From assembly GCA_002811645.1 (NCBI GenBank), contig PDIP01000019.1, forward strand, positions 334,465 to 398,464: a stretch of DNA of 64,000 nucleotides, read 5' to 3'. A program made the translations under genes and the position numbers. The stretch comes from Corallochytrium limacisporum Hawaii (Eukaryota > Protista > Pluriformea). Positions 33,088 to 45,604 of the stretch are shown in pieces. Each line of letters begins with the position of its first letter. Position 1 is the stretch's first letter. The notes below the pieces were generated by a model. That model saw only the letters and a program-made list of their open reading frames with translations. It did no database searches and was not told the origin of the DNA.

Positions 33088-35340
33088 TCACAGTCCCATC
33101 CAAGAACTACTGCCATTCACATTCTGGACGGCACTGAGGGGCAGGCCTTTGGCGTCGCAGAAGCACCATTCATACCACACGCGCTGGTGGTCGTGACGCC
33201 GCCAGATCTGCAGGTTAATCGACTCTCCTGCACTAAGGTGGATTGGATGGCGAATTGGAAAGAAGATCGGAAACCAACTGCTCATGCCGGCACTCATGGT
33301 CTGGGGCACCGTGGACATCAGCACTGCGGGATGTAGGCGCGATTCAAAGTAGCCAAGGAAGCCGTCCAATTGCACCTCCTGCGGTGCGGTGAAAGTAAGG
33401 CTACAGTGCCGCTCGTACTTCTCCTGTACGGACCAATCTTCGCCGGCTGCGGATCCAACAAGCGTAGACGGATGCGTGAAATCCCAGCACCGCTTGGCCT
33501 GATCAAACGTGTATGCGCACTGCGCCTTGACGACGTACGGAGTATCGTAGTTCTTGAAAGGTTCCCGCTGCGACGGCGCCACGAGGGCGTTCAGTGAATT
33601 GCGCAATTTTAGGGACATGACCGGTGCGGCGAAGGCAGTGTAGGACAACGGAACACTCTGTCCACGACCATCTTCGCGGAGCAAGTGGTACTCCGCAGAG
33701 TACAAGCACTCGGGAGACAGTTCATTGTCACCGAATGATCCGAGCAATTCGCTGACGAGCAGATCCGCCCGTTTGCCCTTAAGCTGCGGATGCATGCGTC
33801 GCATATCGGTTTCGATGACAGTGACCTTGCCATCCCACTCACGCTGATTGCGGTAGTTCAGAGTCGGCACCGCACCAGCATTCTTTTCTATGGCGAAGCA
33901 GGTAATTGGTACCCCTGTACTCTGGGAGGCGGTGAGAGCGGCGGCCACTAGAGGACCACGGCCTGCACCAACCACCATAACCATCACGGGTCGCTCGTTG
34001 ATCGGAACTGCAGGATCATCTCCCGAACTCAGCCCTTTCAGACAGTGTTCGATGGCATCTTTGTACAATTGGTACTTGATTGGATCCTGTTCAAAAACAG
34101 CATACGTCTGGCTCTGCAGATTATCACTCAATGGTTGTAAAGGTGCCTGCAGATAGTCCTCCCAACCGCCTGTGTTCTTGTGATACAGTTCCTGACGGCG
34201 CGCCTCTCGCAGATTGTGGCAAATGTAGTTGCAGTAGTCCTCGTGCAGAGCAGTAGGTTCATCCTCCAAAACCTCCTCATGTCCCCAACCGAGGACCTCA
34301 GACCGTTGGCTACTACGCAGAAACAGACGCGCTCCGTTCGGCATCAGACGCGCAATGACCTTTTGGTGGAACTGCGAGAGCACAGCGACGCCCTTGCGGT
34401 TTACGATAAACCGATCGGTGCAGATCTCAATTGCTCCGACGGGCTCTCCAGCCCACCGATCCATGGCCGCGGCAACATCAAAAGGAATTCCGTTCCGATC
34501 AATGGCCTCACTCTTGGTCTGTCCATGGGCAGGACCATTCAACACCACCCCCTTGAGGTCTTCGTGAAAGAGCAGTGTAGGCATGATGTGCGCATTGCCA
34601 CCGCTGGCAGTCTTGATGCTACTCCAAATATGCCAACTATGGATGTCATTGACCGGAAAGGTAATCCACATGCCAATCTCCCGCGTTCCAGTCATGGGTC
34701 CGAGAACACTGGCAATGATGCCAGGTATGTACTTTGGTGGACAGTTGGCCCAGTCCACACGTATAAGGATGCCTGCGCAACCGCAGTGCAGGGCCCAGTT
34801 AATGTCAGCAACCATACCCTTTTGCATTGCAGGGCCCCATAGGTCGTCCTCTGTTAGTGCCTTGCTGTTCTGTTGTCCTTCCTGCTTGGCACCTTCAAAT
34901 TTCTCTTGCTCATCGTTTTCTTTAGGATCCGTATGGTTTTGGTTGTTCTTCATGTCTGTGCTCTTGAACCAGGCATTGTTCTCGTCCTTCGCCCCAGTTG
35001 CTCCCGTTGGTCCGTTTGCGACTGCAGAAAGATCGAAGGGCTTCGGACGCCCAACATAACTGTGGCCGTTGACGCGATCCAGCACCCCATGCGGCTGTAC
35101 GGTGCCCGGTTTGTCCGGAGGGCCCACGTTCGGCCCACCATAGATCTCCGCAACGACCCGATCTGACCACTGGCGCGTATCCAGATCGAAATCGGCCGAG
35201 ACGCCTGACCTCCAGCGGTTAATGTGTTTACTGTCTGGATGGCACATTGGCAGAACTAAGAACGAGTAGCCCGCTGCCAAAGCATCATTGAGCACCCGCT
35301 TTGGGTCGGCATAACCACTGAGACATGCTCTACCAACCAT
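33088..35340 (-). CDS. PRMT5: Protein arginine N-methyltransferase 5
   Basis: EDYLQAPLQPLSDNL, YAVFEQDPIKY, VVGAGRGPLV, VSELLGSFGDNELSPECL, SWFPIFFP and VWYEW motifs. Confidence 0.96.
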   Translation of the reverse strand: MVGRACLSGYADPKRVLNDALAAGYSFLVLPMCHPDSKHINRWRSGVSADFDLDTRQWSDRVVAEIYGGPNVGPPDKPGTVQPHGVLDRVNGHSYVGRPKPFDLSAVANGPTGATGAKDENNAWFKSTDMKNNQNHTDPKENDEQEKFEGAKQEGQQNSKALTEDDLWGPAMQKGMVADINWALHCGCAGILIRVDWANCPPKYIPGIIASVLGPMTGTREIGMWITFPVNDIHSWHIWSSIKTASGGNAHIMPTLLFHEDLKGVVLNGPAHGQTKSEAIDRNGIPFDVAAAMDRWAGEPVGAIEICTDRFIVNRKGVAVLSQFHQKVIARLMPNGARLFLRSSQRSEVLGWGHEEVLEDEPTALHEDYCNYICHNLREARRQELYHKNTGGWEDYLQAPLQPLSDNLQSQTYAVFEQDPIKYQLYKDAIEHCLKGLSSGDDPAVPINERPVMVMVVGAGRGPLVAAALTASQSTGVPITCFAIEKNAGAVPTLNYRNQREWDGKVTVIETDMRRMHPQLKGKRADLLVSELLGSFGDNELSPECLYSAEYHLLREDGRGQSVPLSYTAFAAPVMSLKLRNSLNALVAPSQREPFKNYDTPYVVKAQCAYTFDQAKRCWDFTHPSTLVGSAAGEDWSVQEKYERHCSLTFTAPQEVQLDGFLGYFESRLHPAVLMSTVPQTMSAGMSSWFPIFFPIRHPIHLSAGESINLQIWRRHDHQRVWYEWCFCDAKGLPLSAVQNVNGSSSWMGL

Positions 35341-36540: not shown

Positions 36541-37254
36541 GGGGAGGGGAGGAGGAGCGAGAGAGGGGGTGGGGAAATGGTGGTGGTGGTGGTGAGGTGG
36601 TGTTTAGGGTTGCAAAAAGTTACAAATTGCTTCGAAACATACACCACAGAAATCTGGGAAACGCCAAAATAAAGTAGAAAAAGGGAGAGATACTCTTAAA
36701 AAAGGAATAAATCAGAATGGAAGAGAGAAGATAGAGAGAAAAAAGCAGGCAGGGGCCGGTTGGTGGGGGTAGCTGGAAAAGCTACCCGGTGGAGAGGAAA
36801 GATGCCGACACCGGTAGTCTCAGAGACGAACGAGAGATAGGAAGAGAGGGAGACACAGTGAGCGAGAGAGAAAGAGAGAGAGTGGGAGATCGCCAATCGC
36901 ACAGAGATTGGGCCGGGTACCGGTCTCGTTGAGAGCGGGAGTGCAGGTGGCTACCCCTTCCAACTTCTCTCAGTCTGGCGACCGTTAGTCGGTGGCTTTG
37001 CCATATCTGGGCTGTGGTTGTATGTTGGCTTTTGGGTTCCCTTCACTCTCTCTCCCATTTACCACCCCCCCTCTCCTGGGAGTGGGCCCTTCTCTTTTTC
37101 TTTTTCAAGGCCCATACATTCTTCGGCCAATTTATCGGTGACGCAACATAAAATTGGACTCCCCACACGCATAAATTACAAATATTAGCCGTATGTAAAA
37201 TATCTCGTGTCACTACAGCACTACATGTACATATTTTTTGCCCCTCGAGTTCTT

Positions 37255-37398
37255 GCCAATCTGAGCCCATGTGGTCATGGGTGCAGGCTTCAAACCTGTA
37301 GGTGTCTCGCAGGCACAGGGGTTCGATACCCAACGTATTTCGTCCCAGGATCTTACTGCCCGGGGGTGTAAAGTGGGCGAAATTCCTCCTGATTGGCG
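37255..37398 (+). tRNA. tRNA-Sec (anticodon UCA), eukaryotic 9/4 fold, with a 56-nt intron in the T-loop (exons 37255-37327 and 37384-37398)
   Basis: Acceptor stem GCCAATCTG/CTGATTGGC (9 positions, one U.U). D-arm CCCATG-TGGT-CATGGG (6 bp, 4-nt loop). Anticodon arm TGCAGG-CT-TCA-AA-CCTGTA, with the anticodon at 37290-37292. Long variable arm GTGTCT-CGC-AGGCAC. T-stem GGGG/CCTC (4 bp). Discriminator G at 37398. The spliced T-loop reads TTCGATT. Confidence 0.93.
37328..37383 (+). other. Non-canonical tRNA intron (position 59/60) with bulge-helix-bulge junctions
   Basis: GGGG-TTCG-[ATA]-CCCA ... TGGG-CGAA-[ATT]-CCTC: a 4-bp central helix flanked by two 3-nt bulges and two outer helices. Confidence 0.88.
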
Positions 37399-37403
37399 CC
37401 ACA

Positions 37404-37412
37404 TTTTTTTTT
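37404..37412 (+). terminator. RNA polymerase III oligo(dT) terminator of tRNA-Sec
   Basis: T9 run starting 6 nt after the discriminator base. Confidence 0.8.
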
Positions 37413-37792
37413 ATGTCCCTTTTTTTTTTTACTTCTTTTATGAAGGGTTTCCGGTTCTTTATGTGTCCGTGGACATGGAGAACGAGAGAAGGCAGATGGC
37501 GGCTGGCCGCCAAGGGCATTGCCCAAACCACTGGGACACTAAAGAAATCTCTGAACGGAACGAACATCTTGATGGGCGAAGGGAGTTTGTTGTGTATTCA
37601 TAAAACTAATGCAATTTCAACACATCTACAAAGCAAAAAGGCCAACGACAAATTGTGCAGATTTGGGCGAATGTTACACAATAAGCCGTCATGCTCTTCT
37701 TGGACATGCTTGAATTTGTGTTAAACTGATAAGTTGTGTTGATTTGGGGGTGGGTGGGTCTTGAAGTGATGTTTTCTGGTTTTCAATAAAAT

Positions 37793-40700
37793 TTACAGCC
37801 CCTTCCTGCCAAGGACACGGTAGCGCTGCTCGCGCAGACGTCCAAGGCGCAAGCGGGCGTCCTGCAGCTCACGCTCCAGGCGCAGGACCTCTGTCTGGAG
37901 ATCCTGTTCCTTGCGCATAAACTGCACCATAGACATGGGGGTGTCAGTGTCGAATTTGCCGGAGTCCTTAGTCTCGCGCTGGCGCACGGCTTCGACGAGA
38001 CGATCGGTGGCACCCTTGACCTTCTTGCCGGCACTGTGCAGATTCTGAGAGGTCTTTGCGTTCGGGTCAGCCTTGACCTGCTGGGCCACCAACAGCTGGG
38101 CAGTGCAGGCGGCAACATTGCGGGCGCAGGCAATCAGACGATCCTCGGGGATGTCACCTTCGGCAGCAACAATATCATTACCGACGGTACACAGATCCTT
38201 TGTGCCAGAAACAACGGCCTTGGCAGCGGATACGAGACCTTCAGACCACATGAGGTCCTCATTGTAGCGAGTGGAGCTCTTATCGACGGTAATCTTTCCA
38301 TCCTTGATCAGTTCCTTGTTGGCAGCAATGGCGCAAGTGACCAGGCCAGCACAGGCTTGGGCAATCGCCTGTGTGGCTCCAAGGAGCATGGATTCCATCT
38401 TGACATCGTATCCAAGATCTTCTGCCTTCACATTCTGCATTTCCGCTTCGCGGGACTCCTTGAGGGCCTTCATGTCACCAGCAGCGGCCTCGATAGCGGC
38501 CACCGCATCAGTTAGGCTCTGCTCGGCAATCTTCGCAGGATCGTCGGCGTCGTCCTCAAAGTCCTGGCCAGCCAAGCGACGGCACATGTCGTTGATGCGA
38601 CCAAAGGAGTTGGCGACGAGGCGCATGACAGTGGAGTGATCACCGTCCTTGACAGACTCCGTGAGATCACTGTTCAGTGCCTCAAGGAGATCACGCAGAC
38701 AAATACCTCCTTCCAAGACCACACGCTGTAGGTTGCGGCTGCTGTCATCTGTTTCACAGGACAGCATGACGCTGCGGCAGGTGTCGAGCATGTTCAGGGC
38801 ATTCTTGCGCACAGTATTGGAACGCTCAGCCACGTCCTTCACGCGGCCTTCCTCCACAGCCGCGGACAGCTTGGCAGCCTCGCGGCTGGCCGTGAAGGAG
38901 AAGCGCAGGAGCTCTTCAGGCTCTGCCTGTTGGGGCAGTTGCTGAAGAGAAGACTGGGGACCGGACGAAGTTGCGGCCTTCTCAAGGTCTGACATTCCCA
39001 ACTCGAGGGCATCGAGTGTGCCTTGGAGAGCGAGAGAGGCGCGCATGTTCTCATCGTCTAAGGAGCCAGACAGGTCGTTCAAGTTCTTGACCAGTGATGA
39101 CAGCTTGGCAGCAGCCTCTGCCAAAGAGCTTTCGTCATTTGCGGTGGCGCTGGTGCCCTTGGCGGTCACACTCTTAGCCTGAGCCATCACAGCAGACATA
39201 GCACCGCAGATGTCCTTGGCGGAGTTGAGCAGCAATTCCTTGGTGGATTGGTCGCCGTCATCGGTCAGACTGCGCACTGCAGTTTTGGTGGCAGCCACAA
39301 GAGAAACACAGACACTGCTGGAGTCGTTGGCGATCTTTTCTAGCTCGTCTTGGACGGTGGAAGAATCGGCGCTGACAACCTTGTTGGCACCAGAAGCGGC
39401 GACGGCCACATCATTCAGAGCGTTCCGCAACTTCACAGCCGCGTCAGCAGTGGGCATAACCTCACCTTCCTCATCGGCGAAGGAGCCAGCTGCCATAAAT
39501 AGTGTGGCGGTCGCCAGTTCGTTCATCAGATTGTTTAGACGGCCAATGGAGGTGTCACACGCAAGAGAGCCCTTCTGCGCTTTCTGCAAAGTCACCAACA
39601 CATTCTGAATGGCAGTCATCACTTCGTTAGAACGGTCACTGAAGCCACGGCGAACAGGTGAAGAGGTCGGGCTGGCAAACAACTTGGAAGCAGCTTCCGT
39701 CATTCCAACATACTTCATACCGAGGGCCTTGGTGTCAGCCAGGATGGCCTCCCGCAACTCGCCTGCCAGCTTGTCCTTAGCAGCGTACGCGTGCTGAGCC
39801 ACACTGGCAAACTTGACGTACCCCTGGGCAGCCTCACGGCAGGCCCGGGGCAATTGCTCCGGTGGTGCCATAAGCACACCACTGGTACCCTGACCAACGG
39901 TTTTAGCAGCTTTGAAGAGAGCGTCCACCAGGGAATAGTTCGCACCAAACCCGTGATCGTTACCCTCTGGTGTATCGGTGAGTGTAGCACCAGCACGGTT
40001 GATAGTGGTAATAATCTCACCAAAGACCTTAGCATTGTCACCAGCGGATTGCAACTGGGTCTCCAGGGTGGCTAAGCTGCGGCTGAGGTCCTTACCAGCT
40101 GCTTCCACCTGAGTGTGGGCCTTGCGGGCCGCACGATTACCACCGGATTCCTTGGTGGCATAAATGAGTTGCATGCCGGCCTCGAGGGAGGTCTTGGCAT
40201 GGGTGATGGACTTGGCTTGGAGGACCTTGTCAGTCGATGGCAGCAAAGAGCTATAGCCCACAGACATATCTGCCACGGCGCGCACGTTTGCCTGCAAAGA
40301 CACGACGGCATGACCTAGACGGTTGGGCTCACCCTTGGCAGCCACAGTGACATCCATGATATCCTGCTGGACATTGCTGATCGACTCCAGGAGCTGACTC
40401 ATGTAGCCATCAATGTCTTGATCTTCACGGGGTTCAAGTTCACCCATTGTCACTGCCAGCAAGGCACGATCCAGTTCAGTCATGGCCATAGTGATTTCAT
40501 CCATGGCCTCAGCGCACTGCTTCTGACCAGGAGCAGCATCCTGAATGCACTGCAGTACGTTGCGAACCACATCATTGATGCCCTTCGAGTACAGGTTCAT
40601 TGCATGCACAGGCGCAGATGATCCACTCTCCACTGCAGAGTTATCAGCGCCGCGCAGCCAACCCCGTAGTTCGTCGGTCAGGCCGTCAAATTGGTCGGTC

Positions 40701-43700
40701 AAACGGCCAGCAGTGTCAATAATGGGTTCCATGGCAGCACGTCCCTCAAAACCAATGACAGCTGCAGTGCCGCTGAATTCAGGTCCACTCAGGGCCTGGC
40801 TGACGTTCTCAACCTGTGCACTAAAGGCGTCCGCAGCCTCTGAAATTTGGTCACGAACTTCAGCGTTGTCACCGGAACCGATGGTCTTGATAGAGCTAAC
40901 AATGCGGCTGAGACCGCTAGCCAGTTCCTGAGCCCGGTCACGCAGGCTGTCGGCGGAGTAGGAGTTGTCCTTCTCCTCAATACTGTCAGCCGCAGCACGA
41001 ATCATCTGAATAAGCGTACCACCGTCAACAGTCATAGAGGTTGCAGCCTGCAGGAACTCATCTGTGGTGCGAGTCTGCTGGCGAAGCATTGTGCACTGGT
41101 CCTGCAGCTTAGAGGTCACGTTAGTGACGCGCTCCATGGCAATCAAACCTGGCACGGCAGCGGTGGAGGACGGATCAGCAATGGCAACCAGATAAGCAGA
41201 GTGAGCAGAGGCGGTGAGAATATCGGAGAGCTCACGAGCAGCTTCCAATAGACGCGGGCCAACCTCTTCTCGCTCACTATTGCGGACCTTATTGGTGATC
41301 TCATTGAGCATTTGCTGGGCATCCTTGGACTTGTCTCGAATGTTCGCAACGCAGTCGAAGTAAGCAGCATTGAGCTGAGGGTATTGGGCCTGGTGCAAAC
41401 GGTTTGCACCCGTGAGCACAATGTTCTGGGCCTCGTCACACTCACGCAGACCAGGGATGTCGCGGGCGATCAGAGAGGCCAGCAGACCGTTGATGCTCTC
41501 GCTCATCTCACGAGCAGCGACAGCAAGGGCGTTGGTTAGCTGAGGGGAGGTCGGATCGGTGACGCCAACTTTAGCAGTGTTCAGCAATTTGACTGTGGTG
41601 ACAGCCAAAGACGCGACATAGTCGATAATGTCATCCCGGGCCTTGGGGTCACTGCAGATGTGGGCCAGACCACAGGTGGCCAGGTATAGCTCCTCAAAGC
41701 TGTGGTAGACCTGGTTTGCACTGCGTGCCACAGCATCATGGCCCTCGTGGGCAGCTGTCTGGAGCTCAGTGGTCGCATTGCGGAAAGTGGCAGCCAGCTT
41801 GTTCACACGGGCGGTGAGATCATCGTAGCTGAGCTCACCATTCATGCCTACAACATTGGTGGTGTCTGCCTCTCCGCTGATGAGCTCGTTGATAGCAGCA
41901 ACTGCCTCATCCACGTCGCGGACACCAGGCAGATGTGGAATCATTCCCTTGAACAAAGCGCTCAGGGCAGCAGCAGCAGACTTCAGATTTTCAATCTCTT
42001 TAGGCTGGACGGCACCCTCACCTTGTTCTTGGTGCTTCTGCAGAGCCTTCTGTGCACCGACAACAACGGCGCTGGACTGATCAAGAATAGCCAACAGGCT
42101 CTCCATGATACGGCGTTTGTTCTCCATACCGAGCTCATCGTCGCTGTCCTCAGCAGCCGCAATGGCACGGATGTCGAGACTGAGTTGCTTGGAAGCGCCA
42201 GCAACATCACGGGCAAGCTGAGAGCCCAGACGATTATCGCCAGACTCAGCAGCAGCACAAAGCTGCGCCATGGCGGACCGCAGCATACGAGCAGTGGAAG
42301 TCAGGTTCGACACTGCAGCGTCACTGTCTTCTCCAGGCAGCACAAGCAATTTACCGTTGTCAATGGCCTCCAAGTTAGCATTGGCGTTGGCCTTGAGCTT
42401 CTGCAACTGTTGCACCGCTACGGCCATTTCCAAGGGCACACACATTTCCTGCGCCCCTTTAGCCATCTCGTTCAACGCATTGGCAGCTTTGGCGGATTCA
42501 AAAGCAGCTTGGTTCAAGGTGACAGCAGACGCACGGTCCTCAATGGCAGGTCCACAGGACTTCGAGGTTTGCACAGCCCGTAGGGTTGGTACAATGGCCT
42601 CCAGGCAGGCACTGACGAGATTCAGGTGGCCTCCAGCATCGTCCATGTCATTTTCAAAACCATCGATGGCATCAATGAGCTGAGCACAAGTGGTACCGTT
42701 TTCCTTGAGCACAGCGGTCATCTGCTGCATCAGGTGCGGGTAACGGATCTTGTTAAGCATAGTGTTGGCTGTAGTGCCGAGATCAGTGTTGCGACCGTGC
42801 AACTGACGAGCACATTCAGCAAGATTGCGCATGACGCGCTTGCGCATGACATCCTCAGCAGCAGCAAAGGCAGCATCCTTGACCTTGTATGCGGCAGATT
42901 TGAGGTCAGCTTGGGCATCGGGGTCGTTGGGATCAACATGGGCTTCGCGAATGGCGGCGATAAGGCCAGAGGTTGCATCTGCAATACTCTTGGCAGCGCC
43001 CAGAAGGCGACTTTTCTCGTCGTCCCCGTCGGCCAGGTTCTCAGTGCGGGTCTTCAGGTTGGCAACCAGGACACCGGCAGCGCTGCCCATGACCTTGGCA
43101 GCCTCTACCATGCCACGAGTGTTACCCAGAGAGTCAATGAGTCTGTCGCAGCCGGTGACAATGTCGTTGCAGGCACGCTCCACCTCGCTCTCGGGGGTGG
43201 CAGTAACTTGACCACCGTCCTCGGCGGCTTGACCGAGATTTTCCAGAGCGTTCTTGAGGTCCTTTGCGGCAGACAAAAGACCACCAGAGTCATCACCAGA
43301 AAGCATGTTTGTGTCGCAAAGTTGAAGAGCCTCCTCCAAGGATTGCTCCACAGCACGAATAGCAGCCATCAGCTTCTGCTGAGCTACTTCAGAATGCAGC
43401 ACTGGGGTCAGCAGTTTGCTGATGGCAGCAAGGTCACTGCAACGCTGGCTAAGATCCTTGGCGCAGTCGATGAGACGGCTCTGCTCGAGAGGGTCATCAC
43501 AGGCAGAGGCAGACTGCTTAAGAGCGGTAAGCATGGCCTGACCGCGGGCAACCAAAGCCTTGCTCAAGTCGTGCATGCCCTTAACGTTGTCAGGGGTCAT
43601 GTGTTGACGACCACCCATGCGACTGAACAGCACCTGAGTGGCCTTACCAAGGCCTACGGCTGAAGCCAGCATTTCCATGCGTCCCATAGTCTCGTTATCG

Positions 43701-45604
43701 TCGATAAAGTTCATCATGTGGCCGGTAGCATTGGCCATTTCCCGAGCAGCAGCAAGAAGCTTGGCAGATGCCTCGTCGTCACCAGACAAAGCAGCGAGCA
43801 TGCGAATGTCCTTCACGCCAGCGTTCAGTCCAGCAATAATTGCAGCAATCTCCTTGGCAGCCAAAGCGTTGTCGAGACCTTCCTTACCATCTAGGCCGGC
43901 GGTCATCTCACAAAGATTGGCCGCAGCCGTGCAAATGTTGTTCAGATGAGTCATGACGTTCTGACGGGCACCGTTCTGAGTACGGTTCTTCCAGGCGACC
44001 GAGGCTGGGTCATCGCCCATTGGCGGCAGCTCAGTGGCAGCGTTCAGGTCAATTCCGGCCTGTTCCACAGCAGTGCGGGCATCGTTCAATTGGGAGCTCA
44101 AGAGCTGCTCAGCGACAGACATGGGCTTGGCGGCCTGGAAATGCTGCATCTGAGCCTGCTGCAGCTGCCCGTATTGGGCGACCTGAGGCATGCCTGAAAC
44201 ACCGGCGTAGGACACCGCTGCGGCACCAATGCGACCGGGCATGGCAACACTGCCTTCGTGGGCAAACTGCTGGTTGGAAGGCAAATACTGCAAAGCAGTG
44301 CCACGTGCAGGCTGGATATGTTCCTCCATGGCACCAGTCAGTTCCACATCGTCGATGTCAAGCTTGTCGGGGTTGGCACGCTTCTTCAGAATGATATCGA
44401 TGTAACCACCGATGAGGTTGGAGATGGCATCACCCTCAGTGGTCTGGAAAGGAACCGGAGGACGGTGGTCACCAAAATCAATGGTGAAGGTCTTAGGACT
44501 CGCTGCCCAACGGCGAATCTGGCCCATGGGCCATTTTTCCAGAACCTCTTTAGTCTGCTTGCTCAGGCGCATGACTGTATCACGGCTAATACCAAGAAGT
44601 ACAGGCTCCAGTTTGCTGCGTCCGGGTACCTCCTCACGTACCAGGAAGAAGGTGATACCATACGTGGGCAGACGGCGGCTGAGCTGAATGTAACGGTACT
44701 TAGCGTTCACTTCGTTCATACCCTTCAGTTTGGCATACTCGGTGGCTACCGACTTGTTGATGCCACGAATTTTCACGTACTCGTGCGGCAGGTAGTCCCG
44801 CACTCTCAAGGACTTGGCCTTCTCGTCGGTGTAATCGCCCAATTGCACCTGACATTGCATGGCAGAAAAACGAACGGTATCGTCTTCACTGCAAGGGTGG
44901 CTGCCATTCAGAATGGCATCACGGCTCTGTACGTACAGCAGATTCAGCTGAATGGGATCATTACGATCCACATTCTGGTCAGAGTAGAAGAATTTTTTCC
45001 GCAGAATAACCATAGACTGGTCCTCCAGTCCCTGTTCGCCCAAGGTACGGTCATGCTGCAGCCATTTGGTGTCCTCGTCAGTCTTAAGCTGCGCCCTCAG
45101 CTTTTCCATTTTACGGTTGACCTTTGCTTCGTAGTTCAATCGCTTCTTGGTGACACCGGCCTGGCTCTTTGGTCCTGCCTTGTCGGCCTCACCTTCATCA
45201 GGCTTCTGGTCATGGACTAGAGAGTATTCCTCAGGATTGGCCAGACCAATCTTACGGCACACTTCCTCAACAACGGAACCGACCTTCTGAGACTCATCAA
45301 TGATGACCATCTTGGTGCTCCCGTCCATCATCTTCACACGTAGAGGACGATGCTTCTTGCGATACTGCATCAAGTCACCAGTCTTGACGTCATAGTAGTC
45401 GAAGGTTTTGCCCATTTCCAACCAACGACCCTTGGTAGAAGATTCGTTCGGGAAAAACAAACCAAAGTCAGACATCTTGGACTCGTCACCGATGCGTTCT
45501 CTGATCATCCGGCATGCGTCGTAGACACTCTCACCAGCCTCGAACTGCATGGTCTTCATTGCTCCGGTCTCCCCGAAGGAGATGCGGAGGCTAATGGGTG
45601 CCAT
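37793..45604 (-). CDS. TLN: Talin (F0-F3 FERM head, helical rod, C-terminal I/LWEQ and dimerisation helix)
   Basis: KTMQFE, LRKKFFYSDQNVDRNDPIQLNLLYVQSRDAILNGSHP, RRWAASPKTFTIDFGD, LIGGYIDIILKK, WSEGLVSAAKAV and TAQLLVAQQVKAD motifs. 2603 aa in one uninterrupted ORF. Confidence 0.97.
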   Translation of the reverse strand: MAPISLRISFGETGAMKTMQFEAGESVYDACRMIRERIGDESKMSDFGLFFPNESSTKGRWLEMGKTFDYYDVKTGDLMQYRKKHRPLRVKMMDGSTKMVIIDESQKVGSVVEEVCRKIGLANPEEYSLVHDQKPDEGEADKAGPKSQAGVTKKRLNYEAKVNRKMEKLRAQLKTDEDTKWLQHDRTLGEQGLEDQSMVILRKKFFYSDQNVDRNDPIQLNLLYVQSRDAILNGSHPCSEDDTVRFSAMQCQVQLGDYTDEKAKSLRVRDYLPHEYVKIRGINKSVATEYAKLKGMNEVNAKYRYIQLSRRLPTYGITFFLVREEVPGRSKLEPVLLGISRDTVMRLSKQTKEVLEKWPMGQIRRWAASPKTFTIDFGDHRPPVPFQTTEGDAISNLIGGYIDIILKKRANPDKLDIDDVELTGAMEEHIQPARGTALQYLPSNQQFAHEGSVAMPGRIGAAAVSYAGVSGMPQVAQYGQLQQAQMQHFQAAKPMSVAEQLLSSQLNDARTAVEQAGIDLNAATELPPMGDDPASVAWKNRTQNGARQNVMTHLNNICTAAANLCEMTAGLDGKEGLDNALAAKEIAAIIAGLNAGVKDIRMLAALSGDDEASAKLLAAAREMANATGHMMNFIDDNETMGRMEMLASAVGLGKATQVLFSRMGGRQHMTPDNVKGMHDLSKALVARGQAMLTALKQSASACDDPLEQSRLIDCAKDLSQRCSDLAAISKLLTPVLHSEVAQQKLMAAIRAVEQSLEEALQLCDTNMLSGDDSGGLLSAAKDLKNALENLGQAAEDGGQVTATPESEVERACNDIVTGCDRLIDSLGNTRGMVEAAKVMGSAAGVLVANLKTRTENLADGDDEKSRLLGAAKSIADATSGLIAAIREAHVDPNDPDAQADLKSAAYKVKDAAFAAAEDVMRKRVMRNLAECARQLHGRNTDLGTTANTMLNKIRYPHLMQQMTAVLKENGTTCAQLIDAIDGFENDMDDAGGHLNLVSACLEAIVPTLRAVQTSKSCGPAIEDRASAVTLNQAAFESAKAANALNEMAKGAQEMCVPLEMAVAVQQLQKLKANANANLEAIDNGKLLVLPGEDSDAAVSNLTSTARMLRSAMAQLCAAAESGDNRLGSQLARDVAGASKQLSLDIRAIAAAEDSDDELGMENKRRIMESLLAILDQSSAVVVGAQKALQKHQEQGEGAVQPKEIENLKSAAAALSALFKGMIPHLPGVRDVDEAVAAINELISGEADTTNVVGMNGELSYDDLTARVNKLAATFRNATTELQTAAHEGHDAVARSANQVYHSFEELYLATCGLAHICSDPKARDDIIDYVASLAVTTVKLLNTAKVGVTDPTSPQLTNALAVAAREMSESINGLLASLIARDIPGLRECDEAQNIVLTGANRLHQAQYPQLNAAYFDCVANIRDKSKDAQQMLNEITNKVRNSEREEVGPRLLEAARELSDILTASAHSAYLVAIADPSSTAAVPGLIAMERVTNVTSKLQDQCTMLRQQTRTTDEFLQAATSMTVDGGTLIQMIRAAADSIEEKDNSYSADSLRDRAQELASGLSRIVSSIKTIGSGDNAEVRDQISEAADAFSAQVENVSQALSGPEFSGTAAVIGFEGRAAMEPIIDTAGRLTDQFDGLTDELRGWLRGADNSAVESGSSAPVHAMNLYSKGINDVVRNVLQCIQDAAPGQKQCAEAMDEITMAMTELDRALLAVTMGELEPREDQDIDGYMSQLLESISNVQQDIMDVTVAAKGEPNRLGHAVVSLQANVRAVADMSVGYSSLLPSTDKVLQAKSITHAKTSLEAGMQLIYATKESGGNRAARKAHTQVEAAGKDLSRSLATLETQLQSAGDNAKVFGEIITTINRAGATLTDTPEGNDHGFGANYSLVDALFKAAKTVGQGTSGVLMAPPEQLPRACREAAQGYVKFASVAQHAYAAKDKLAGELREAILADTKALGMKYVGMTEAASKLFASPTSSPVRRGFSDRSNEVMTAIQNVLVTLQKAQKGSLACDTSIGRLNNLMNELATATLFMAAGSFADEEGEVMPTADAAVKLRNALNDVAVAASGANKVVSADSSTVQDELEKIANDSSSVCVSLVAATKTAVRSLTDDGDQSTKELLLNSAKDICGAMSAVMAQAKSVTAKGTSATANDESSLAEAAAKLSSLVKNLNDLSGSLDDENMRASLALQGTLDALELGMSDLEKAATSSGPQSSLQQLPQQAEPEELLRFSFTASREAAKLSAAVEEGRVKDVAERSNTVRKNALNMLDTCRSVMLSCETDDSSRNLQRVVLEGGICLRDLLEALNSDLTESVKDGDHSTVMRLVANSFGRINDMCRRLAGQDFEDDADDPAKIAEQSLTDAVAAIEAAAGDMKALKESREAEMQNVKAEDLGYDVKMESMLLGATQAIAQACAGLVTCAIAANKELIKDGKITVDKSSTRYNEDLMWSEGLVSAAKAVVSGTKDLCTVGNDIVAAEGDIPEDRLIACARNVAACTAQLLVAQQVKADPNAKTSQNLHSAGKKVKGATDRLVEAVRQRETKDSGKFDTDTPMSMVQFMRKEQDLQTEVLRLERELQDARLRLGRLREQRYRVLGRKGL

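Follow-up and report, generated by a model that had tools for sequence, protein, structure and literature searches.

The locus at positions 37255-37398 raises two questions: whether it is a working selenocysteine tRNA gene interrupted within its T-loop, and by what route such an interruption would be removed. The window, which is the whole stretch of DNA that was analyzed, is 64,000 nucleotides in length. The original prediction, made from these letters alone, placed it in an apparent unicellular holozoan, and its source is indeed such an organism, Corallochytrium limacisporum. Judged on its sequence, the locus is most likely a functional tRNA-Sec gene broken by a genuine intron at position 59/60.

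The gene lies on the forward strand and is composed of two exons. Exon 1 (37255-37327) matches Rfam RF01852 with 48.8 bits (E 9e-07) and contains the 5' strand of the acceptor, the D arm, the anticodon arm, the variable arm, the 5' strand of the T-stem, and T-loop positions 54-59. The anticodon TCA (37290-37292) sits within a CUUCAAA loop (37288-37294). The 56-nucleotide intron (37328-37383) is followed by exon 2 (37384-37398), which is 15 nucleotides in length and supplies U60, the 3' strands of the T-stem and acceptor, and discriminator G73. The hallmarks first listed for this tRNA (9-position acceptor, D-stem, UCA anticodon arm, variable arm, T-stem, and G73) are all in place, and its last 15 nucleotides are split off by 56 nucleotides as described. 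The D-stem has 6 base pairs and a 4-nucleotide TGGT loop, and the variable arm is long. The acceptor forms 8 out of 9 pairs, with T.T at the eighth position; human tRNA-Sec likewise has T.T there. The 9/4 acceptor/T fold of 13 base pairs (8 out of 9 plus 4 out of 4) arises only once 37328-37383 is removed. By every sequence feature, the spliced locus is a eukaryotic tRNA-Sec (RF01852). The insert falls outside the canonical 37/38 class with its anticodon-intron pair, in that the anticodon loop is uninterrupted and the insert is at 59/60.

The junctions had been predicted to fold into a strict bulge-helix-bulge (BHB), and every pair of it is present. The structure is of the hBHBh' form with 4+4+4 pairs and two 3-nucleotide bulges around a 4-base-pair helix. 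Its 5' strand (37318-37332) runs through the T-stem, the central helix strand TTCG, the bulge AT/A, and the intron helix strand CCCA, with the 5' splice site at 37327/37328. Its 3' strand (37374-37388) contains the intron helix strand TGGG, the central helix strand CGAA, the bulge AT/T, and the 3' strand of the T-stem, with the 3' splice site at 37383/37384. The T-stem pairs 37318-37321 with 37385-37388, the central helix TTCG/CGAA pairs 37322-37325 with 37378-37381 (four Watson-Crick pairs), and the intron helix CCCA/TGGG pairs 37329-37332 with 37374-37377. Cutting after the second base of each bulge yields, as proposed, an 88-nucleotide tRNA with a 7-nucleotide T-loop, a 4-base-pair T-stem, and G73. 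The eight intron-dependent BHB pairs were reached by 0.08% of 20,000 intron shuffles (P 0.0008). The T-stem, acceptor, and G73 are completed at only 3 of 127,970 window positions, one of which is the true exon 2, 56 nucleotides downstream.

Standard finders were expected to miss or truncate such a gene, and they do. ARAGORN reports no tRNA on the genomic window, and the RF01852 match to the unspliced gene (cut-off 47 bits) misaligns the 3' strand of the acceptor to the insert with most pairs broken, giving a wrong, unpaired 3' end. With the sequence spliced in silico, ARAGORN calls tRNA-SeC. An intact tRNA-Sec elsewhere would have counted against the locus; across the genome, the only RF01852 match above cut-off is this one, and the exact Sec anticodon arm occurs once. 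The genome has a use for tRNA-Sec, since SepSecS (E 3e-111) and an Rdx-family gene with one in-frame TGA are present. No orthologous locus was found by a metagenome pattern scan; its 11 loci are all uninterrupted bacterial selC genes that match the pattern by chance, and they were rejected as orthologues.

Upstream of exon 1, an AT-rich TATA-like element followed by a T run (37222-37240, forward strand) is a putative external Pol III promoter. The related motif TATATA-N2-6-ATTTTTS has 32 matches in the genome against 6 for a control, most of them preceding tRNA genes, and it is likely to be an external Pol III promoter; the tRNA-Sec copy is degenerate and lies outside the strict pattern. A protein resembling the TFIIIC B-block was found in the genome with a weak score. 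Copies of another short motif, GTACTGAAT, are found both among tRNA leaders and within the spacer of a permuted tRNA-Ala (L009, L053, L083, and L087). Downstream, a T9 run (37404-37412, forward strand) is the likely Pol III terminator. A genomic CCA (37399-37401, forward strand) directly follows G73 and may be chance; genomic CCA is found in about 3% of eukaryotic tRNA-Sec genes (PMC5330540). The neighbors on the minus strand are intronless genes for PRMT5 (33088-35340) and talin (37793-45604, 2603 amino acids). Two probable RNA runs of the organism cover the flanking mRNAs only, with none on tRNA-Sec, and because they differ by a few SNPs at these flanks, a second strain is on record.

The assembly used for the genome-wide census is 24.1 Mb in 286 contigs and is incomplete (83.4% BUSCO; PMC5560861). 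The census is composed of 42 nuclear RF00005 matches and the loci behind the upstream TATATA...TTTTT motif. The tRNA search covered the best 63 of 584 candidates, and intact copies could thus be missing. Inserts at 59/60 were identified in eight nuclear tRNA genes on eight contigs: Sec, Gly(UCC), Gly(GCC) in two copies, Cys(GCA), Arg(ACG), Ser(CGA), and Leu(UAA). They are 23-57 nucleotides in length. Since the introns of both Gly(GCC) copies are related to each other, the eight genes amount to seven independent cases. A mobile intron family was considered and rejected, as the intron sequences are unrelated save for this pair.

Splice points were fixed by T-stem and acceptor pairing and not by the BHB, so the central helix is an independent test. 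Intron bases -6 to -3 pair 4 out of 4 with T-loop positions 54-57 in all eight genes, and the shuffle chance of this helix ranges from 0.009 to 0.044 per gene. Every spliced product has a 7-nucleotide T-loop and the expected ARAGORN call. A good intron helix is present in six or seven of the eight; Arg(ACG) is without one. The partner strand complements the T-loop, as TTCA/TGAA in Arg(ACG), with a compensated pair, and as TTCG/CGGA or TTCG/CGGG in Gly, with G.U pairs. When folded with ViennaRNA, the BHB is the minimum structure in four genes and lies 1.1-4.2 kcal/mol above the minimum in the other four (Sec, Gly(UCC), Gly(GCC) copy a, and Arg(ACG)). The Sec BHB is at the upper end, 4.2 kcal/mol above the minimum with a pair probability of about 3%, because the CGAA strand is taken up by a helix formed within the intron.

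About 10 of about 47 nuclear tRNA genes read are non-canonically disrupted, and 59/60 holds 8 of the 10 non-canonical junctions. The original prediction had centered on Sec. The T-loop intron stands, but it is not special to Sec and characterizes the C. limacisporum tRNA set across the genome. Each of the three Gly genes identified carries such an insert, and so does the single exact match to Cys. Splicing at 59/60 looks essential for Sec, Cys, and Gly decoding: as every Gly and Cys gene found is interrupted, Gly and Cys codons would be unreadable without it, unless the assembly misses intact copies. That the sole Gly and Cys genes found are interrupted is the strongest functional argument. 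Within the best 63 of 584 candidates and the loci behind the TATA-like motif, genes for Gly(CCC), Leu(CAA), Ser(UGA), Val(CAC), and Arg(UCU) were not found.

The remaining two non-canonical junctions are in other positions. The initiator tRNA-Met gene (L060, contig C22, about 166400-166570, minus strand) has two introns, one of 31 nucleotides at 37/38 and one of 57 nucleotides at 43/44. The latter has a strict BHB, the outer helix of which uses the end of the 37/38 intron. A tRNA-Ala(CGC) gene (L053, contig C242, about 178000-178160, minus strand) is circularly permuted with its junction at 15/16; it contains (left to right) the 3' half, a 26-nucleotide spacer, and the 5' half, and when rejoined gives a normal 72-nucleotide tRNA-Ala. 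The D-loop of the rejoined tRNA is identical to the one in Thr(CGU), whose D arm is uninterrupted. Its termini form a BHB-like structure of the HBh' form, with 4 out of 4 pairs in the central helix, a flanking helix of 5-6 base pairs, and no exon-side helix. An A-box-like copy in the leader, upstream of the 3' half, could restore the order of A box then B box. Introns at 37/38 are also present in Ile(AAU), Ile(UAU), elongator Met, Ala(AGC), and Thr(CGU), with looser pairing, which is usual in eukaryotic 37/38 tRNA introns. These BHB-type junctions at 59/60, 43/44, and 15/16, and also at 37/38, support the position-independent BHB splicing that had been suggested for this organism, as far as sequence can indicate it.

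Several other tRNA loci are unusual. The canonical intron of tRNA-Ile(UAU) (L083:1824-2125, contig C268, minus strand) is 227 nucleotides in length and exceeds the cited range of 6-133 nucleotides (PMC4090602). Between this gene and the TATA motif upstream of it lie about 300 nucleotides, which include a T-arm-like fragment. Acceptor positions 1-2 are mismatched in Thr(CGU) (L051, C257:40820-40955), Leu(UAA) (L075, C238, about 23530), and Ser(AGA) (L047, C21:607-688). Two Thg1-family genes are present in the genome, which fits 5' repair or editing of nuclear tRNAs with such mismatches. Alternatively, Thr(CGU) may be permuted at 2/3, where GG immediately follows U73 and the central helix has 3 out of 4 pairs; the equivalent is weaker in Leu and absent in Ser. 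A search for acceptor-stem permutation in Ser(AGA), His, Lys(CUU), and Ala(UGC) gave no convincing BHB. A tRNA-like sequence in permuted order (L067:1690-1930, contig C173) has a 3' half with a 6-base-pair T-stem, G73, and genomic CCA, and a 5' half about 80 nucleotides downstream with a D-loop insert; its anticodon reads TTC or TCA, and it may be degenerate. A probable tRNA-Tyr D-loop/anticodon motif (C253:47134-47153, minus strand) lies 43 nucleotides behind a TATA motif and is probably disrupted, since RF00005 missed it. Contig C286 is AT-rich, carries about 20 tRNAs including Trp(UCA), and is the mitochondrial genome.

The genome encodes only two PF01974 endonuclease genes, Sen34 and Sen2; no archaeal EndA was seen among them. 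Both best match the human subunits (E 1e-22 to 1e-26), and their Tyr/His/Lys triads align to the catalytic residues of human Sen2 and Sen34 (PMC8479045). The Sen2 protein is 100% identical to the eukprot entry Clim_evm64s152. Genes for Sen54 and RtcB are present. In the same genome search, Sen15 gave matches below cut-off only, and a Trl1-type ligase gave no match, with the control equally empty.

The favored route starts with a precursor that Pol III would transcribe, running from the TATA-like element in front of exon 1 as far as the T run. The T arm and the intron ends would fold into the BHB, and the organism's own Sen2/Sen34 pair, with or without Sen54, would make its cuts two bases into each bulge, reading the local motif instead of measuring from the tRNA body. 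RtcB would then join the halves into the 88-nucleotide 9/4 tRNA-Sec. The same route would serve at least seven more T-loop introns, the 43/44 intron, and the permuted tRNA, which would make the decoding of Sec, Cys, and Gly dependent on it. Transcription, cutting, and ligation are proposed by analogy with C. merolae, which excises its T-loop introns in vivo (PMC3728597), and from the ability of a eukaryotic endonuclease to splice BHB substrates (PMC4090602). This sequence of Pol III precursor, BHB fold, ruler-free Sen2/Sen34 cutting, and RtcB ligation is given high confidence. Human TSEN recognizes chiefly the mature tRNA body (PMC8479045). Counting against it are the retention of Sen54, the ruler subunit, and the energy of the Sec BHB relative to its best fold.

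These two points belong equally to the best-surviving alternative, in which the introns are spliced but not by free reading of the BHB. Cutting would instead follow a second, body-guided register at 59/60 or be done by another nuclease. The strong bias of the non-canonical junctions to one site, the presence of Sen54 without a Sen15 match above cut-off, and the four genes whose BHB is not the minimum fold would all be in keeping with such guidance. However, the BHB register holds at 43/44 and 15/16 as well as at 59/60, and the genome has no PF01974 endonuclease genes beyond the two. This alternative is given a small chance.

Slightly less probable again is that the interrupted genes are pseudogenes with T-loop insertions, for example remnants of tRNA-targeting elements, with the working tRNAs absent from the assembly. 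Insertions in the D or T arm of eukaryotic tRNA genes are usually classed in this way (PMC4090602), and as TTCGAA is palindromic, a duplicated target site might look like the central helix. The position of the partner strand speaks against this, as it lies at -6 to -3, the BHB register, and not at -4 to -1, where a duplication would place it. It is also a complement and, in Sec, Arg, and Gly, no copy of the loop; target-site duplication was rejected as the source of the helix on both grounds. Exon pairing is complete, the upstream motif and T run are retained, and all Gly, Cys, and Sec genes found are affected.

That the Sec tRNA is used unspliced, folding a GGGG/CCCA mini T arm and keeping the insert as an additional domain, is very unlikely. 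The minimum-energy fold does show the GGGG/CCCA hairpin together with a full acceptor stem, and a B-box-like GTTCGATAC is retained at the start of the intron. Sec enzymes and eEFSec, however, need the 13-base-pair acceptor/T helix, and 56 additional nucleotides placed between its two arms would disrupt it; this reading also leaves the BHB register in eight genes unexplained. An assembly artefact, raised at the outset as a refutation, has the lowest probability of all, since a separately assembled contig from a DNA run spans 36765-38843 without difference or gap (although the run is possibly from the same sample as the assembly) and a single structural rule is followed by eight distinct inserts, each on its own contig.

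If splicing guided by the BHB is correct, C. limacisporum would, on the literature searched, supply both the first opisthokont case and the first non-canonical intron known from a eukaryotic tRNA-Sec. That literature, largely without subscription papers, yielded no report of non-canonical tRNA introns or permuted tRNA genes for Corallochytrium or for holozoans and opisthokonts in general, and nothing relevant on selenoproteins. Eukaryotic non-canonical tRNA introns and permuted genes are listed only for certain algae and nucleomorphs (PMC3978253, PMC4090602, PMC13578239), and a 2026 review leaves ancestral relic, convergence, or transfer undecided for them (PMC13578239). A holozoan case argues that an ordinary eukaryotic TSEN of the four-subunit type can be recruited for motif-only splicing near the animal lineage, and that algal disrupted tRNAs require no special archaeal link. 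The host is a culturable close relative of animals, and its enzyme, being close to human TSEN, would allow the question of ruler versus BHB to be put to the test, namely which changes in Sen54, Sen2, and Sen34 permit cuts at 59/60. Finders of tRNA-Sec and tRNA censuses will mis-score such genomes, reporting Sec, Cys, or Gly tRNAs as lost when they are not.

Known systems share parts of this arrangement. At the level of sequence, the C. limacisporum Sec intron has all the features of the BHB introns of archaea and C. merolae. Its splicing logic is thus familiar, but as far as the literature searched shows, the occurrence of that logic in this lineage and this tRNA is without prior report. The tRNA-Sec of Daphnia pulex also has introns, but these are canonical 37/38 introns of 16 and 25 nucleotides (PMC5330540). 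A 31-nucleotide T-loop intron is described for Lokiarchaeota tRNA-Sec, which is the same tRNA species and the same arm (PMC4989117). That tRNA is archaeal with a 7-base-pair D-stem, whereas the C. limacisporum tRNA is of eukaryotic type with 6 base pairs; shared ancestry of the two introns is unlikely because the C. limacisporum pattern is genome-wide. Crenarchaeal non-canonical introns follow a strict BHB, including at 59/60, and are cut after the second bulge base (PMC4090602) as proposed here, and Thermofilum permuted tRNAs are joined at 59/60 (PMC3978253). Archaeal 59/60 introns are cut by EndA, while C. limacisporum encodes eukaryotic Sen2/Sen34. The type V permuted tRNA-Ser(CGA) of the green alga Ostreococcus tauri, flagged in its source as needing an experimental test, has its junction at 15/16 like Ala(CGC) in C. 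limacisporum (PMC3978253).

The closest likeness is to Cyanidioschyzon merolae. It shares nuclear BHB introns outside 37/38, including in the T-loop, multi-intron and permuted genes, an upstream TATA-like element, a T run, and Sen2, Sen34, and Sen54 without a clear Sen15 (PMC3728597, PMC3978253). It differs in being a red alga with 63% of its tRNA genes disrupted, in which D-loop introns dominate (14) and T-loop introns number 4, against about 10 non-canonically disrupted among about 47 nuclear genes read, with 8 at 59/60, in C. limacisporum. TFC1 and TFC3 were not found in C. merolae, in contrast to the weak TFIIIC B-block-like match here, and no tRNA-Sec case is described for it in the available portions of PMC3728597 and PMC3978253. 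Taken together, C. limacisporum probably combines Cyanidioschyzon-like disrupted tRNAs, with Sec, Cys, and all Gly in need of 59/60 splicing and Ala(CGC) permuted, with TSEN and RtcB of the animal type.
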